Shown here: positions 26,800 through 35,812 of the stretch, one piece after another
How the letters are laid out: each line of letters begins with the position of its first letter
Numbering within the stretch: the first letter of the stretch is position 1
Assembly (NCBI RefSeq): GCF_041956535.1
Contig: NW_027192218.1
Location: forward strand, 15,728 to 79,727
Length of the DNA stretch: 64,000 nucleotides
Direction: 5' to 3'
DNA from: Calcarisporiella thermophila CBS 279.70
Taxonomy: Eukaryota > Fungi > Calcarisporiellomycota
Notes under the pieces: generated by a model
The model's input: the letters and a program-made list of their open reading frames with translations, nothing else
Told to the model about the DNA's origin: nothing
Databases searched by the model: none
Position numbers and translations under genes: made by a program

Positions 26800-29555
26800 T
26801 TATCTGATGAGCCACGACTTGCACAATTTTTCCAGCCATCCACAAAGGCCGGATTCGTTTTCTTTCTCGTCGGCCTCGGTGCTGCCGGATAGCACGACCT
26901 CAACCCGAGCAGAAATTTGGATCTCTTGCTCCTGAGCGAGCTCTTCGACCCACCACCCCAATATCCAGTGAGCGGTGTCGTCTGAAATTGGCTCCCACCG
27001 TCCGCTGGTCAACACGATTTCGGCCTCGGTGGGCGAGGGGAAGATGGCTTTGGGCAAGAAGATCTCGGTCGGATGGGTGGAAAGTTCTGGCGGCGAGAGC
27101 AGACGGAACCGAAACTGGACCACGCTGGAGGACCCCTTGGGGATTATCTCATAAGCGGTGGAGAGGGGAAGGCCAGCGACCTTGTGAGGATAGGGGCGAT
27201 GCAGGGGGGGAACATCGCGAAGATTTTCGCAGGTGGGCGGAGGAGAGTAAATCGTTTTTTGGCTAGCGGCGGGGTCTATCGGCAGTGCTTCTCCGTTGTC
27301 TACTTCCGTGTCGGTCAGGGTGGTAGAGCTTGAATGGCTCACGGAGAACCCGACCTCGCTTCCATCCCCATGCTCAAGCAGGGGGACCCCGCTGTCCGAG
27401 CCCGTGGTATTCATCCGAGTTTGAAGCGAAAACCGCAGCGGCCGTGTGACGTGCGCTTTCACCTCACTGTAGCTCTGGGACTGAAGTTTGTATTTTAGGG
27501 CGGGGGCCGCTTGGAAAATACTGGAAATAAAAAAGGAATGGTGAGAAAGGTGTGTGAAGTTCTTTTGAGCATGCATAGAGGGCTGTGGGAGAAGTAAATG
27601 GGTGTAGATGATTACCTTAGATCTTCTCCGTTCCAATTGTCACCGTAGACGGGGTCGTTGTCTGGACAGTAATTCCACAGGGTGAAGTTCATCAAAGCAG
27701 TATCGAGTGCATGCAAGTTCGCGTCCAGGGCCCTACTCTGGGGGCTGGCCGCGTTCCGGATGTCCCTGCCGTCCCGTATTCCACTTCCCTCCAAATCGAA
27801 AGGAATCCCCACCTCTCCGATCAACACCGGGAAATCCCCAAACTGCTCCTTGGACTCGGCACGAATCAGCTCCATCTGATCCACGAAGCATTGCCGAATC
27901 GCACGCTCTCCGAACCGGATCGCCCCGGCGAGCCCGAGCCATCCATATTTGCCGCGCTTATACCCAAGGTAGTCGACATTGAAAGTACGCCACTTCTTAC
28001 TGATGAGGGTAAGCCCATCGTACCAGTGAGGAGAGTGCACGAGACGCTCGAGAGGCGCCTCCCCCGACGGGTTGAGCGAAGTGGGAGGCTCATTGGGCAT
28101 CGCGTGGGCGAAGATGATGGCATTGGGATGCACTTTTCGCAGGGCCAACGCGTAGCGCCGCGCGTACGGTACCCAGCAGTCGCGAGCCCAGTCTATCGGT
28201 AACCCCGTGCTCGGGTTGGTATAGAAGTAATCCGGCCTCAACAGCGCTCCCGTTTCAGGATCCCACACACCATGCTGTGCCCATAGACACTCGCCTCGTC
28301 GCCACTTGCTGGACTTTTCCCACCAGGGGAAGACACGGTCGCTTCCTTCGAGGCGGGTCCAGTCTTTTTCCGGCACGTCCCAGGCCCGCGCCCCGGCAGG
28401 ATCGATCAGCTGCATGCCTGCGTGATACGGGCCAAATGTGCCCATCTCCCATTTTTCGACCTGAGTGGCTAGCCCATGGCCGAGTTGGAAACCCTGGAAA
28501 GGGGTCGGCATGATATCCTTTCGCAGCTCGACAAAAGGCATCTGCTGACTCAGATCCTTCAGCCCCACGTAGCCAGGCCACGGTTCATTCAAGGTATCGT
28601 ATCCAACCACCACTTCATCGGCCAAGCCTTCTTCGGCCACGATTCTCTTCGCCAGTGCAACCATGGCGTTGATGAAATGGGTCTGCAGATACTCTTGGAT
28701 ATTGACCCCGTCCACAATACATTTGGGGGCAAAGAAGCTGCCTGCAAAGAACAGCGTCATCATGGTAGCGGTTGCCAGTTTGCTGTAGTTGGTAGACCAA
28801 ACCATCTTCGGGAAATTGAGCGGGTCCGGATAGGTGTTATGTACGATGGCCGCGTTGGTGGCGACAAAGCTGTTAGGGTTGAGTCCCACAAGAGTCAGTG
28901 TCCAACCGGGGGCTCCGGATCCGCCGCAATGGCGGGACCACTGTTTTAAATTTGGAGGAGAGATCAGGGATATGCCTATGTGCATGCGATATGGCTATGG
29001 GAAACCTTACCACATCCTGGTGCGGATCTATAAATACTCGAAATCCATATTGCTTGCACTTTTTAAGAACTTGAATAACATACTCTATGTACTCGACATC
29101 ATAAATACCACTAGAGCAAGAGAAGAGAAATGGATATGAGCGAGAAGATAGGGGGAGAAAGTGCTCTGGCACATCAACCGAAATCCAACTTACGGGCCCT
29201 CATGCTCCAAAGCTTCCCAGGTGACCAAATATCTCAGAAAATTGAACCCGAGGTTCTTTAATCTCTGCAAATGGGTATCTGCATCCTCAAGGGAGAAAGG
29301 TCGTCCGACAAAATTGACGAATCGATCGTGATCTACCCAGAAGTCCTTGAGATCGTGGGAAGGGATTCCAACGGGCAGTTTTGTTCCCCCGGATAAATTG
29401 ATGCCCCGGAGAAACAATATGCGACCGCTCTCTTGCTCCTTGAAATAAGGCCCATCAATAAGGAGCATGCCGTTGGATTTCTTTAGGGGAGGTCGTAAAG
29501 AATCGGAAAAATCGGTTGCCTCAGCAGGGATTGAATGGTTAGCTGAATCGATCAT
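26800..29555 (-). CDS. Glycoside hydrolase family 5 (endoglycoceramidase-related glucosylceramidase / sterylglucosidase, EGCrP/Egh1-like), multi-exon
   Basis: LRGINLSGGTKLP; FVGRPF; VTWEALEHEGPGIYD; IDPHQDVWSR; TLNEP (acid/base); PHWYD; IGEVGIP (nucleophile); WNYCPDN..GDNWNGEDLSIF. Confidence 0.93.
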
Positions 29556-30180
29556 TCAACAGGCTCTATATTTCAGTGGGAAGAGAATTTCAGAGGACAG
29601 TTTAGAACTGAGGGAGAGGAGAGGCCCAGGAGGAATGGAGGACTAACAAAGAGAAGAGAAACGAGGAAAAAGCTAGTCTCAGTATATCATTCCTTTGGCC
29701 CAGGTGAACAACAATATTCCCGCAAAAAAAAGTTTATGGGGATAGGAGGGAAAGGAGAAAGGTTTTTGGATTTGGGAACTTTATGCCCCGCCCGTGGAGG
29801 AAGGTGCCCACTGGAAGAATTTGGGCTTAAGGGCGGGTGCCTCTCATGCAGCCTGCCCATTTGTGTGGTTGGGCAGAACTGGATGGCGAGAGGTTAAGCC
29901 ATATCAAGCTTGCAGCACCGCGATACCTTGCATATCCCGCCCAGAGGATCCTAGTCCAGATCCCGCGGCTCTAAATGGGCCGAGCAGCTCAGTAAGTGTC
30001 CTAGTGGAAACGGAACTCCCCGAGCACAGCCGCGTGGGCCAGCCCTTTCCACAACGATCGGCTCAGCTATTTTCTCCATTCTCCCACTGCACGGCCCTAG
30101 CTAAAGAGAAGCCTAAGCCACCTCTGAAATTGTATGTCGTTTAGAGGGTCGCACAGTCTTTTCCTAGAATCGCCTCCACT

Positions 30181-30857
30181 ATGTCAAGCAAGGATCCAAA
30201 GAGACCAAACGCTATAGTCGCCTACCACGTTCCTCGAGCCGAGCAGGATGAGATGGATCCTGATGTGCCTGGCACCATCTCCATGGCCCTTGGTAGCTGC
30301 CTTTCGATTTCTTTTCTACATTTATATGCATCATCTTTAACCAATTCCTCTCTTATTTTTGGAATTAAGGTCTATTCGCCATGCTTGTTAGGGTAATACA
30401 CACATCATACATGCGTCCTGCTTGGATGCTTATAGTTTATTGTCTTGATGCTTACCCTTGTTTCTCCCGATAGCAAAAACTCGCTGGTTGGGGATCTCTT
30501 TGTTTTGCGAGTAAGTTTGCAATACCACGTTAGTTTTTTATTGTAACCCAATGGGCTAACTATGCACTTGCGTATACAGTTATGTCTTATATGAATCAAC
30601 GAGGTAAATTCTTGTGTTCATCTACGTGCCAATGCTCTTTCCTCAGCTTCTTGTGCTTTAGTGACCGAATCGGATGAGAATAAAGGAGGTTGGGCCAGCT
30701 TGATGTAAGTATACCCTACCCCTGAACTCGGTAGCCCAATACTCAAAAATTATCTAGGTTCGCATCATCGGCGCTGCTTATCTGCTACACGCCTATGATC
30801 ATTAACTTGTACTTGGCGCGGACTCAAGCAACGCAGCAGGACAGCTTCGGCAATTAA
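30181..30857 (+). CDS. Asterix/PAT10 (WDR83OS, UPF0139) ER membrane chaperone subunit; ~6 exons including ~23-24 nt micro-exons
   Basis: Assembled MSSKDPKRPNAIVAY..GTISMALGLFAMLVRQKLAGWGSLCFAIMSYMNQR..SLMFASSALLICY matches the DPRRP + 3-TM Asterix pattern. Confidence 0.75.
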
Positions 30858-32030
30858 TTGCGGTTCATGTTACTTATTTAATTATGCTAATAAACTCGTT
30901 AGATTTGCAAGTATGTGGGAGGCTTCTCATTGGAAATGGGCTCCACAAGATACGAACGCCTCTATATCGGTAGCAATGCGACCCTCTAGGATTGACGCAA
31001 GCTATGGCTGCTTTAAAAGCAAATGCCATTTTAGCCATGAAGCACCCCCTTAACAATTAGGAAGACTTACCAGCTGATGCTTATTGAGATACATTTAAGT
31101 GCATGCAGGAAAGTATGCGGGACCTTATTAGGACGAGTAATGCGGAGACCATGCATTCTCCCCTGTCCAGCGTGCTGCTTTTTAAAGAGAGAAGCGGGCG
31201 CAGGATTGTGGGCGCAGAAAAAATCAGTGCCGTTAGGACTCTCGACTTATATGAGGAAGCAAGCCCTTCCTGTTGGGAGAAGCTCGGTGGAGCAGAGAAG
31301 GAGGCGGGTCGGGGGGCATTCTGTTTGGGCGAGAGACATATAGCAAGCATGCCCTGGCACTGCGCAACCACAACAAGAGCAATTAAACAAAACTGGTTCT
31401 GAGTCGAGTTGGGCCGCCTTGAACATTCCTGGAAACGAGACTTCTAGATTGAGGGCTCTGTCCAATCAGCGCCAAGAATCCCACGACGTGATTGGCGCGA
31501 AGCTCAAGCAAAAATAATTAGCGCACGGCAACTCAAGGCCAAATGCAATAATGGGGGGAGGCGGCTCGACACTCTCCAACGTGGCCTTCGCGTGTTCTGC
31601 AGGCATGCGCTCCTATGCGGAATCCGGCCGTATTCCCCAGTGGACTCCTCGGCAATGGATCCGCTGCGGCCGGTTTCTTTAATTTCGATTCTGGTGACGA
31701 AAAGGAATCGGTGTTCCTCCACATACTTCAACTCCTCCCGATTTTCTTGCTCCCCTCTTTTATTAATTCGGCCTCGTCCTTGTCAAAACCACAGGCGAGA
31801 TTGTCTTTTTGGCAAATAACGACAGCTTCCATCCTCCCCTCTATTGATGAATTGCTGATGACTCTTACATAAACCTGCATCCCCTTACCCATCCTTACAT
31901 TTCCGCATATTATTCCTCTGAAGATTTGTAGCTTACTTTCAATCTTTAATTGCTCATCCCCTATATCCCCTCTGACTCCCTAGTCCCGGCCCCACTAATT
32001 CCCCTCTCTAAGGCATTACCTCTTCCTCCC

Positions 32031-33518
32031 ATGTCACACGTGGTTAACCCTCCCACACCCGCCCATCAGCTGCATCTCTCTCAGGATCAGTCTTCCTCTC
32101 CTCTAATGGACTCTGCTCTTCGCTCCTCGCCATCTAGTGAGAAGGGGAGTACCAAAAGCTTGAACCAAAAGAGTGCAAAGGTCAAATCTTTCGACAATAT
32201 CAAGTACAAGTCGCAGGGGGGCAATGTCAAGGTCCAGAGTATCAAGCTAGGTGAGCTTGCCTTGGAAGATAGGTTTTACCAACACTTGTTAAATTTCATT
32301 CGCCTAAATCTAGATTGGTCGCATGTAAAGCCACGGATTGATTCACGTCGCACCGATGATGGCTCGGTGCAGACTTCTCCTGAAACATCTCCTCGCCAAT
32401 CGTCCCGTTCCCAATCCAAAGCCTCGACGCGTGCTGAGCGCCCTCCCGCGCCGTTTTCTCAGAAGCTGGACTGGTCGCATGTGAAGCCTAAGGTCGACGC
32501 CCGCTTGAGTGGCGACCTGCTTACCCAAAGGGCATCCAAGGCTTCGCCTGCAGCAGACGCAAATGAAATCGAGAAAAAGCTTGCAAAGAGAAGACATTCC
32601 AACATAGTGTCTCCAGCAAAGAAGCTGCCCGACTGGTCCCATGTGAAATCCAAAGTGGGCTCCATTCGTAGCGAGGGTGGGCTGCAGAAGAAGGACGAGC
32701 CGGAGGAGAGTGCCGAGAAGAAATCGTCCAAGAGGAACAGCTTGATACGAGCGAGAAGGCGCCACACCGTAATGATACCATCGATTGCCACCGGACAAAA
32801 GTTGGACTGGTCCCACATCAAGTCGAAGGTGGGCTCTATCCGTAGTGAGGAAGAAATGGCGGCAAGCGCCAAGTCGAGTGGCGACAGGAAGCCGTCCAAA
32901 CGCGCCTCGGCAGATAATCGCCGCCACACGTTCCAACCTTTGCCAGGGCAGAAGCTCGATTTCTCTCACGTCAAGTCAAGGATCGGCTCACTGCGAAGCG
33001 AAGAGGAGCGAAAGCGCGAGGAAGAAGTCGCCAAGAAAGCGGCGCGGCGACACACCATCGCCCCCTCGAATACGAAGCTCGACTTCTCCCATGTGAAGTC
33101 AAAAGTCGGGTCTCTTCCCCCCATGGCTCGGTCGCGCACCTCTAGCCTAACCTCGCGCTCCAGTGGCACCGCCGACTCTTCTTCTCGCGGTCGTCGCTCA
33201 ATGCCCCCGCCTCCCGCGCAAAAGCTGGACTGGTCGCACATCAAGTCCAAGGTGGGGTCACTGGACAACATCACCTATGTGTCACACGGAGGCACGAAGA
33301 AAATCCAAAACAACAAGCTACCTGACTTCTCCCATGTAAACTCAAAGGTGGAGTCGGGCAAGAGGGAGAGTAGTAGCATTGCGCCCCAGAGCCCGATATC
33401 CCCTCAGGCCACGCCCAGCAACATGGAGTCCGAGGTGGCGGAGCCCAAGCTTCCACCCCAAACGCCGAAGACGGAGGAAATTCCGGATGGAGAACATACT
33501 GAAGCGGCCCCCCTGTGA
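32031..33518 (+). CDS. Tau/MAP2/MAP4-like microtubule-binding repeat protein; probable 63-nt intron 32251-32313
   Basis: KLDWSHIKSKVGSLDNITYVSHGGTKKIQNNKL versus tau R4 [34 protein letters not shown]; 8 D[WF]SH[VI] units; basic, Ser/Pro-rich, apparently disordered. The start codon is uncertain (32031 or 32106). Confidence 0.82.
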   Translation: MSHVVNPPTPAHQLHLSQDQSSSPLMDSALRSSPSSEKGSTKSLNQKSAKVKSFDNIKYKSQGGNVKVQSIKLGELALEDRFYQHLLNFIRLNLDWSHVKPRIDSRRTDDGSVQTSPETSPRQSSRSQSKASTRAERPPAPFSQKLDWSHVKPKVDARLSGDLLTQRASKASPAADANEIEKKLAKRRHSNIVSPAKKLPDWSHVKSKVGSIRSEGGLQKKDEPEESAEKKSSKRNSLIRARRRHTVMIPSIATGQKLDWSHIKSKVGSIRSEEEMAASAKSSGDRKPSKRASADNRRHTFQPLPGQKLDFSHVKSRIGSLRSEEERKREEEVAKKAARRHTIAPSNTKLDFSHVKSKVGSLPPMARSRTSSLTSRSSGTADSSSRGRRSMPPPPAQKLDWSHIKSKVGSLDNITYVSHGGTKKIQNNKLPDFSHVNSKVESGKRESSSIAPQSPISPQATPSNMESEVAEPKLPPQTPKTEEIPDGEHTEAAPL

Positions 33519-34024: not shown

Positions 34025-35007
34025 TCAGGGACTTAACCGCCTCTCCAGTTCCCTAACAATCCCCTCCTCGGCAATGACCACCTCCCGCTTCAAAAGTTCA
34101 TAAACTCCCACCTCCTCTATACTCAACACCTCTACTCCCGGCAAGTTCCGTGCCGCCAGCTCCAACTCTTTTCTCTCCCCGCTATTCCCGATAATGAAGA
34201 GTATGGAGTCCCACTGATTGCGCTGGATGATGTGAGCCAGCTCCTGGGTCTTATGGGTGGGTAGTGCAAGAGAGTCCACCACGACCAGCTGGTTTTGAGC
34301 GTATTTAGTGGAGAGGGCAACCCGAAGGCCAAGATTGCGTACTCTCACGGGCAGCTCCGTTGTGTGATCGCGCGGTTTTGGTCCAAAGGGTATGCCACCT
34401 GTTCAGCTCCTTCACGTTAGCATCCCAGAAAAGAGAGACAAGCAAGGAAAAACAATCAAGACACTGGGCGCAGATCGCCACTGGTGCATATCTAGTATTT
34501 ACCTCCTCTAAATTGAGGCGCTCGAATAGATCCATGCCGCGCTCCTCCCGTGCCTTTTTGCGGTAAAATCTTTCTTGAACTTCCTCGCACATCCGCCCGG
34601 CCTTTGGTGGAGTGAGTGCCTTGGCGCAAGGCATCACGTTGCCATACCACTACGCGATGGAGAATATCGCGCCGTAGAGGCGCTCCGAATACCTTGCGAT
34701 CCAAGGAGATAATGGCGGTAGGTTCAGATGTTGGAAAAGTGCGGAGGAGAGCTTGGAGAGTGGAGGGAATGGGCGAAATAGCTATCAACCAAGATTCAAT
34801 ATGGAGGTGGGAGGTTAGCCAAATGGCCTCGATCTAGATTGCGAAGGCAGGATTCATACCTTTGGGTGCTTCCGAAGCAAAAGTGCGGGAAAGCGCCCTT
34901 CGGCATGGGTTCTATCGGCAATGATAAACATGTCAGGTTATGCCATCATTCATCACACGGGAGAATGTCTTATATACTTGTAGTATCTGTGTTGTTATTT
35001 TCCACAT
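34025..35007 (-). CDS. YML6: Mitochondrial ribosomal protein uL4m, multi-exon
   Basis: Presequence [10 protein letters not shown]|[14 protein letters not shown]; [51 protein letters not shown]; FGPKPRD; [11 protein letters not shown]. Confidence 0.93.
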
Positions 35008-35185: not shown

Positions 35186-35812
35186 ATGGAGGCCTCAACA
35201 AATCCGTCCAATGCCGGCATTATTTCTCGCAATGGTGAACGTGTTGTTCCAGCGTCGAGAAGACCCGATGGATCTCTTCGAAAGGAAATTCGCATTCGAC
35301 CTGGGTACGTCCCACAGGAGGACATTCGTCGGTACACCAATGAGCGTCTTGAGGCGGCTCGACGGATGCGATTGGCACAAGAGGCGGCTGCCAAGGAGGG
35401 ATTAGTCGCAGGAAGCAGCGGATACTCGCCGGCATTACCACCAGGATATGCACCGGTATCCTCCCAGGTAGAGCTTCCGATCCGAGAGAAAACGAAAAAT
35501 CAGAAGAAGCATGAAAGACGACGGAAGAAGAATGAAGAAAAGAGAGCAGCGGAACAAAGTGCAACCAAGGCACAAGAAGAAAGAGTTGAGGAGGAGATTC
35601 AAGAAAAGAAGGAGCCGGAACAAAGGAAGGCAGAGGAAGAGCCTGAAAAGGAGGACGTCAAACTTATGCGTTCTTTGCAAAAGAAACTTCAACAGATCGA
35701 GGTGTTACGAGAGCGAGAGGCGCAAGGAGAAAAGTTACAACCAGAGCAGCGAGAGAAAGTGGATCGCTTGCCAGAACTGGAGTCACAACTTCAAAAGCTC
35801 CAGATAAAATGA
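35186..35812 (+). CDS. PYM1: Partner of Y14 and Mago (PYM1/WIBG), exon-junction-complex disassembly factor
   Basis: VPASRRPDGSLRKEIRIRPGYVPQED; C-terminal LQKKLQQIEVL..LQPEQREKV; divergent from uL4m across 178 bp. Confidence 0.92.
   Translation: MEASTNPSNAGIISRNGERVVPASRRPDGSLRKEIRIRPGYVPQEDIRRYTNERLEAARRMRLAQEAAAKEGLVAGSSGYSPALPPGYAPVSSQVELPIREKTKNQKKHERRRKKNEEKRAAEQSATKAQEERVEEEIQEKKEPEQRKAEEEPEKEDVKLMRSLQKKLQQIEVLREREAQGEKLQPEQREKVDRLPELESQLQKLQIK

Follow-up and report, generated by a model that had tools for sequence, protein, structure and literature searches.

Repeats of the tau/MAP2/MAP4 type tend to be described as an invention of animals, and studies of tau have been confined almost entirely to neurons. 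In the thermophilic Calcarisporiella thermophila, which belongs to the early-diverging fungal lineage Calcarisporiellomycota (NCBI taxonomy), a 495-codon open frame runs from its first ATG at position 32031 to position 33518 on the plus strand of the 64,000-nt stretch of DNA analysed here (the window; C28:15728-79727, on a 392-kb contig of the 28.2-Mb assembly), and since it reads as a protein of precisely this repeat type, the question arises what such a protein would do in a fungus and what its many half repeats are for. From our point of view the best answer, to which we assign a probability of about 0.7 (0.72), is that the gene encodes a disordered, multivalent microtubule-associated protein (MAP) of the tau/MAP2 type (PF00418), namely a module-amplified ortholog of other fungal proteins, whose anchors would be set along the protofilament ridge; the microtubule binding, its geometry and its regulation are what we infer from the sequence.

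The frame contains a 63-nt intron (32251..32313; GT..AG, phase 1), which is in frame, free of stop codons and splits the first KLDWSH unit. Splicing joins ..IKL to DWSH.. and shortens the product from 495 residues by 21 to 474, with exon 1 (32031..32250) supplying residues 1-73 and the first base of codon 74, including a Ser/Pro-rich N-terminus and the unit U0 described below, and exon 2 (32314..33518, including the stop codon) supplying residues 74-474. The joined exons are a letter-for-letter match of a 474-residue "uncharacterized protein" of C. thermophila in NCBI/UniRef (P0001), and this database copy of the spliced product was used as the query in the later comparisons. An N-terminal unit had already been described in the first-pass annotation, a reading of the DNA letters alone, and it is because of the removal of the intron that this unit can be read. 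If the intron were retained, it would add 21 residues inside U1 and leave the frame unbroken.

Against the Pfam family PF00418 (tau/MAP tubulin-binding repeat), the check proposed in the first-pass annotation, the protein scores 153 bits (cut-off 27; E 1.7e-45) over nine stretches, and phmmer against the PDB sequences returned tau only. The best match there (E 7e-12) is the microtubule-bound R2x4 construct 6cvn, so that human tau (MAPT; PDB 6cvn, 6cvj) and the fungal protein share the same 31-residue repeat family. The proposal of a tau/MAP2-repeat protein in an early-diverging fungus is hence borne out. No Pfam domain other than PF00418 was detected in the 474-residue protein. A PF00418 profile scan of the 28-Mb genome gave matches inside this gene only (44.6 bits for U7) and no paralog, which makes it the sole tau/MAP2-repeat gene of the C. 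thermophila genome. The protein is not an ortholog of MAPT, MAP2 or MAP4 singly, because these subfamilies arose in early vertebrates (PMC4815063); with PF00418 as its only family feature and a fungus as its host, it stands outside the vertebrate MAPT/MAP2/MAP4 orthogroups.

Of the nine PF00418 stretches, seven are first-half (anchor) units, one is a second half only and one is a full repeat. Each of them matches the family when scanned alone, the seven first-half units with 19-29 bits, and the make-up of full plus half repeats that had been noticed at first reading is thereby confirmed. U0 (32169..32243, residues 47-71; this and all following units on the plus strand) is a second half only, with KVKS, FDNIKY and GGN (hidden Markov model (HMM) positions 15-31 for residues 40-71, 17.8 bits), and aligns with tau R3. 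It is followed by two degenerate first halves of R' type, U1 (32244..32351, spanning the intron; residues 72-86, with VKPRIDS; HMM 1-19, 23.8 bits) and U2 (32463..32507; residues 124-138; HMM 5-17, 19.2 bits), in whose anchors Pro stands for the first Ser and Asp for Gly. Four modules then combine an RRH[S/T] motif with an anchor: U3 (32589..32663; residues 166-190, core 177-190; RRHS, a short hydrophobic/Pro segment and a canonical anchor; HMM 5-20, 23.9 bits), U4 (32757..32837; residues 222-248, core 236-248; RRHT and a canonical anchor; HMM 6-19, 25.3 bits), U5 (32919..32990; residues 276-299, core 287-299; RRHT and an anchor with KSRIGS; HMM 6-20, 27.0 bits) and U6 (33045..33113; residues 318-340, core 328-340; RRHT and a canonical anchor; HMM 5-20, 28.9 bits).

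The sole complete tau-type repeat is U7 (33222..33314; residues 377-407; HMM 5-30, 45.8 bits), which aligns with tau R2 and R4 and has the length of 31 residues, the KxGS anchor, the DNIxH-type segment (LDNITY), a Gly turn and a final KKI, although the turn reads HGG and not PGGG. U8 (33315..33359; residues 408-422; HMM 1-19, 20.9 bits) lies at the place of the tau R' pseudo-repeat, with which it aligns, and is degenerate in its anchor (Asn for Lys, Glu for Gly). An acidic, Pro-rich tail (33360..33515, residues 423-474) ends the protein. U7-U8 together align to human tau R4/R', where a hand count gives about 20 identities in 34 aligned positions, in agreement with the likeness that had been claimed for the C-terminal unit. 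The KL(P)D[WF]SH[VI] units listed in the first-pass annotation are likewise real, but they number eight, not seven (starting at residues 72, 124, 177, 236, 287, 328, 377 and 408, and thus 52, 54, 58, 51, 41, 49 and 32 residues apart), and U1, U2 and U8 among them are degenerate. Contiguous units are found in U0-U1 and U7-U8 only, and the protein has no domain of 3-5 contiguous repeats, which characterises the architecture of the animal proteins and is no Pfam criterion.

What such a half repeat retains can be judged from the structure of tau on microtubules described in the preprint of Kellogg et al. (2018; 10.1101/267153). The tau segment that is best ordered there is VKSKIGSTENLK, with V256-S262 on alpha-tubulin; both of its Ser residues bond alpha-tubulin Glu434, its Lys lies opposite alpha-tubulin Glu420/Glu423/Asp424, and its Ile occupies a pocket of Tyr262/Ile265/Val435 at the inter-dimer interface. 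Upstream of it, tau Lys281, Leu282 and Leu284 are placed against the tubulin surface, while further along the chain turns at an Asn, extends a Lys to the alpha-tubulin tail and inserts His299 in beta-tubulin, all of this downstream of the segment; the PGGG of tau is invisible in the cryo-electron microscopy maps (all 10.1101/267153). In the fungal protein, U3-U7 keep the full upstream-plus-anchor contact set with conservative swaps (I for V, R for K, W/F for L), and since the whole set is kept, the half repeat is precisely the inter-dimer anchor of tau. The part with Asn, Lys and the aromatic residue (the DNIxHxPGGG half, which lies over beta-tubulin) is left in U0 and U7 alone, and charged linkers of 28-45 residues have taken its place in the other units.

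The partner surface is equally preserved, as the three alpha-tubulin genes of the genome have LVPYPRIHF and the H12 segment FSEAREDLAALEKDYEEV unchanged, with all of the acidic and hydrophobic residues named above present. With anchor residues and alpha-tubulin partners both conserved, the lattice-binding role that had been proposed at the outset is the most reasonable reading. A complex prediction of alpha-tubulin (the 423-residue last exon of locus L007) with U4 (P0001 residues 228-262) gave an ipSAE of 0.00 in both runs, which were made without controls, and is evidence neither for nor against the contact. As to the tubulins themselves, loci L006-L013 comprise the three alpha-tubulin genes (last exons of about 423 residues) and at least five beta-type loci, a fairly large set for a 28-Mb fungal genome.

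One could also imagine that only U7, together with U0/U8, still binds tubulin, that the half repeats are decaying relics and that the protein is consequently a weak one-site binder. The half repeats do score lower (19-29 bits versus 45.8 for U7), and they are without the half that faces beta-tubulin. However, relics would not be expected to be held as these units are: any two cores among U3-U7 have 9-13 of 13 amino acids in common although each pair differs at 5-8 synonymous codons, U4 and U7 are even identical at 13/13 with five synonymous changes, and the linkers between the cores are unalignable. Because the cores agree in protein, differ at synonymous positions and are separated by diverged linkers, they represent old duplications under purifying selection, and such selection makes it unlikely that the half repeats are relics. 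The part retained is, moreover, exactly the 12-residue stretch of tau that is seen best on microtubules (10.1101/267153). As such, we regard decay to a single binding site as quite improbable.

If the half repeats are working anchors, the chain that carries them has to be considered next. The protein has a net charge of +36 and a composition rich in Ser, Lys, Pro and Arg, and it is predicted to be intrinsically disordered, with a predicted local distance difference test (pLDDT) value of 0.38 in the Atlas model and a mean pLDDT of 51 in an AlphaFold2 model built with 14 homologs. The Atlas structural neighbours reach a template modelling (TM) score of at most 0.20 and are meaningless for a disordered model. 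The AlphaFold2 model contains a single helix at residues 303-319 (pLDDT about 81-85); this 17-residue, E/K/R-rich helix (33000..33050, plus strand), which lies between U5 and U6, is the sole confidently predicted secondary structure of the protein. The basic disordered chain is a trait in common with human tau, as are the KxGS anchors and the Ser/Pro/Arg-rich flanks. In other respects the two proteins differ. Tau has 3-4 contiguous full repeats, whereas the C. thermophila protein has one full repeat and seven first-half units, mostly 41-58 residues apart via charged linkers; its turns read HGG/QGG in place of PGGG, and the long acidic projection domain of tau is lacking.

Taken together, the basic disordered chain would most likely lie along the outer ridge of microtubule protofilaments and dock via up to five canonical 13-residue anchors of the form KLD[WF]SH[VI]KS[KR][VI]GS and three degenerate ones. 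The anchors would occupy successive alpha-tubulin inter-dimer sites (helix H12 and the hydrophobic pocket, as in tau) with the linkers looped out. Since a tau repeat spans about 80 Å with about 27 extended residues (10.1101/267153), a spacing of 41-58 residues would reach the next site with slack, and the linkers would be long enough for the next anchor site 8 nm away on the same protofilament or for one on a neighbouring protofilament. The cross-linking of protofilaments by the half repeats, as suggested in the first-pass annotation, is speculation.

It is further possible to propose a mode of regulation. KxGS is present in four anchors and RIGS in a fifth, and four RRH[S/T] sites for basophilic kinases (residues 166, 222, 276 and 318; window 32589-33056) stand 10-14 residues before an anchor. 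Because of these KxGS anchors and linker sites, the affinity for microtubules is probably tuned by phosphorylation, as in tau, and the four loci of the genome that encode kinases with a KA1 domain (MARK/Kin1-type) would be candidates for the kinases involved. The four RRH[S/T] sites correspond to the single RR.S.HIIPTQK of proteins from Mortierellaceae, Umbelopsis and Bifiguratus, and a further RRS is found before U7.

Several points weigh against the lattice-binding MAP as outlined. In three units (U1, U2 and U8) the anchor residues are degenerate, and five of the seven first-half units are without the turn-forming Asn as well as the Lys and the His/Tyr with which tau contacts beta-tubulin, so that each anchor alone may bind weakly. 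In addition, PF00418 predicts tubulin binding by homology to animal proteins, and no assay of a fungal member was found in the literature. It is also conceivable that the anchors have been co-opted and that lattice binding is not the main role, be it for the recruitment of soluble tubulin or the formation of condensates, for actin, or for a phospho-dependent adaptor that acts through RRH[S/T]. The spacing of 41-58 residues, which departs from the lattice-matched period of 31, and the repeated kinase sites in charged linkers would suit such a protein. All residues that make the alpha-tubulin contact are, however, kept on both partners, and the protein gave no sign of any further domain or motif family, and we therefore hold a co-opted function to be improbable. 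Somewhat more credence, although still little, may be given to an extension of the lattice-binding reading in which the anchor-only units represent a distinct, selected mode of reading the lattice: five to eight minimal anchors on linkers with kinase sites would staple non-adjacent sites, protofilaments or microtubules under the control of two kinases, perhaps as an adaptation that stabilises microtubules during growth at high temperature.

A tau-type repeat outside the animals raises the question of its origin, and here it has to be weighed whether the sequence is an animal contaminant, was acquired recently by horizontal transfer or is a short motif that arose by chance or convergence. The family is best known from animals, and some animal proteins match P0001 as well as fungal ones do. 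The gene nevertheless lies on a 392-kb contig, contains a short fungal-type intron and is surrounded by ordinary fungal genes, including a GH5 glycosidase, a ribosomal protein of the L4/L1 family, a Mago-binding protein and a protein kinase. The upstream neighbour (26800-28985, minus strand) has a GH5 C-terminal domain, and downstream follow the intron-split gene of the ribosomal protein (34025-34788, minus strand) and that of the Mago-binding (PYM-like) protein (35186-35812, plus strand). Between the upstream neighbour and the gene, about 3 kb (29000-31950) are without an open reading frame (ORF) of at least 130 residues. ORFs that run antisense to the gene (e.g., 32343-32969, minus strand) matched no family and were set aside as a by-product of composition. 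Colinear orthologs are present throughout Mucoromycota and homologs in chytrids, fungus-specific motifs are common to the relatives, and a chance match is excluded by the E-value of 1.7e-45. With genomic context, colinear orthologs, shared motifs and E-value all speaking against them, contamination, transfer and convergence were rejected and can be regarded as effectively refuted.

An exhaustive phmmer search of 1.84 billion representatives gave 103 matches, among which only P0001 itself fell below 1e-30 and the next best reached 4e-23; close kin with the same layout, P0001 apart, is thus not found below 1e-30 in these representatives. A profile search gave 653 matches, of which the best 120 were listed, many of them nameless. 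The names recovered in the various searches include, from Mucoromycota in the broad sense, Glomeromycotina (Gigaspora, Cetraspora, Racocetra, Paraglomus, Funneliformis, Rhizophagus, Acaulospora, Geosiphon), Mucorales (Syncephalastrum, Helicostylum, Pilobolus, Mycotypha, Benjaminiella), many Mortierellaceae, Umbelopsis and Bifiguratus, and beyond these four chytrids (Spizellomyces, Powellomyces, Geranomyces, Irineochytrium) and many animals, some of whose proteins score like distant fungal ones against P0001. No Dikarya and no non-opisthokont is found among the named matches, which given the nameless ones and the listing of the best 120 of 653 does not amount to absence; from the lack of a named Dikarya match, the family was apparently lost later in this group. 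That both the repeat and R' occur in chytrids, in Mucoromycota and in animals speaks for an origin in the opisthokont ancestor at the latest, and these relatives would place the repeat, including R', in the common ancestor of fungi and animals. A pre-opisthokont origin, as postulated in the first-pass annotation, is not supported, as the named relatives among the matches listed are animals and fungi only.

The fungal occurrence as such also proved less novel than had been assumed. PF00418 homologs are already databased across Mucoromycota and in four chytrids, often under the automatic name "Microtubule-associated protein" in NCBI/UniProt, and a Rhizopus delemar homolog was shown, with a passing mention of its "distinct" architecture, by Suendermann et al. 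(2016; PMC4815063). Apart from this mention, full-text searches of the literature gave no functional study of any fungal tau-like MAP.

How, then, did the layout with its many half repeats arise? In Mortierellaceae, Umbelopsis and Bifiguratus, the N-terminal part consists of one or more repeats, an R'-type unit and a long Ser/Thr/Pro linker; the centre holds one module of RR.S, HIIPTQK and an anchor, whose second half is already degenerate in Mortierellaceae; and the C-terminal part comprises another linker, a full repeat and a near-tau R'. BLASTP of P0001 against the Actinomortierella protein P0032 is colinear over residues 49-419 (E 2e-12), U2 has an 11-residue stretch identical to one in the N-terminal unit of this ortholog, and in a MAFFT alignment U5 falls on the central module of the Mortierellaceae/Bifiguratus orthologs and U7-U8 on their C-terminal block. 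Judged from these alignments, the gene has its orthologs in Mortierellaceae, Umbelopsis and Bifiguratus, namely in a group of uncharacterised proteins called "Microtubule-associated protein" (such as P0032, P0030, P0011, P0005 and P0022), with which it shares the colinear plan, including the C-terminal full repeat plus R'. These relatives have one central module, usually with a recognisable second half, whereas C. thermophila has four with the second half gone and, unlike them, two R'-type units at the N-terminus.

The RR.S.HIIPT motif occurs once per protein in 27 of the compared proteins, the named ones being from Mortierellaceae, Umbelopsis and Bifiguratus, while in C. thermophila four loosened copies of the module (RRH[S/T], a short hydrophobic/Pro segment and the anchor) are found at U3-U6. 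In a crude motif count over the 243 proteins compared, anchor-only units number eight here and at most five in any other. From the sequences, the layout is best explained if the central module was amplified four-fold in tandem and lost its second half, and if the N-terminal R'-type unit was duplicated as well. The architecture that had been called novel is therefore so only in part: its plan is colinear with the Mortierellaceae orthologs, and only the multiplied central module sets C. thermophila apart. What is new here is hence the four-fold amplified anchor-only modules, since the family itself is already catalogued in early fungi, where it is apparently unstudied.

The gain is modest for now, as Pfam makes the family assignment obvious, public annotation already contains it and the functional statements are all inference. 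Among the 243 proteins compared, however, this one presents the most extreme natural dissection of the repeat, in which the alpha-tubulin anchor alone was kept and multiplied, and it thus bears on which part of a tau repeat suffices for lattice binding. If anchor-only lattice binding holds true, the protein would represent a natural "minimal tau" whose functional unit is the anchor and not the full 31-residue repeat, and it would offer, with its chytrid and Mucoromycota relatives, a non-animal system for the biology of tau-type MAPs. The fungal branch of the classical MAPs includes tractable relatives in Mucor, Mortierella and Spizellomyces, which are possible simple models.

The more distant relatives keep a more classical layout. 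Proteins of Glomeromycotina and Mucorales (such as Gigaspora P0002 and Helicostylum P0012, and likewise the Rhizopus delemar homolog) have PF00418 with the anchor and DNIxH motifs as here, but arranged as 6-8 contiguous full repeats with a period of 30-34 residues and without anchor-only units. The invertebrate tau-like MAPs (tunicate, mollusc, starfish, nemertean and insects), a non-vertebrate outgroup of the family whose scores are about those of distant fungal proteins, also have tandem full repeats and are without the RR.S.HIIPTQK module. A few single entries depart from these plans. The Acaulospora morrowiae protein P0141 has PF00418 fused to a mechanosensitive-channel domain, which probably represents a merged gene model, and the PF00418 protein P0205 of Umbelopsis nana is named "cell surface agglutination protein Map4", probably through a name collision. 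Finally, the chytrid protein P0204 (Irineochytrium annulatum, 663 residues) combines about nine degenerate PF00418 repeats without KxGS, of the type PRVDAR..HKAGGG, with ankyrin repeats at the C-terminus.

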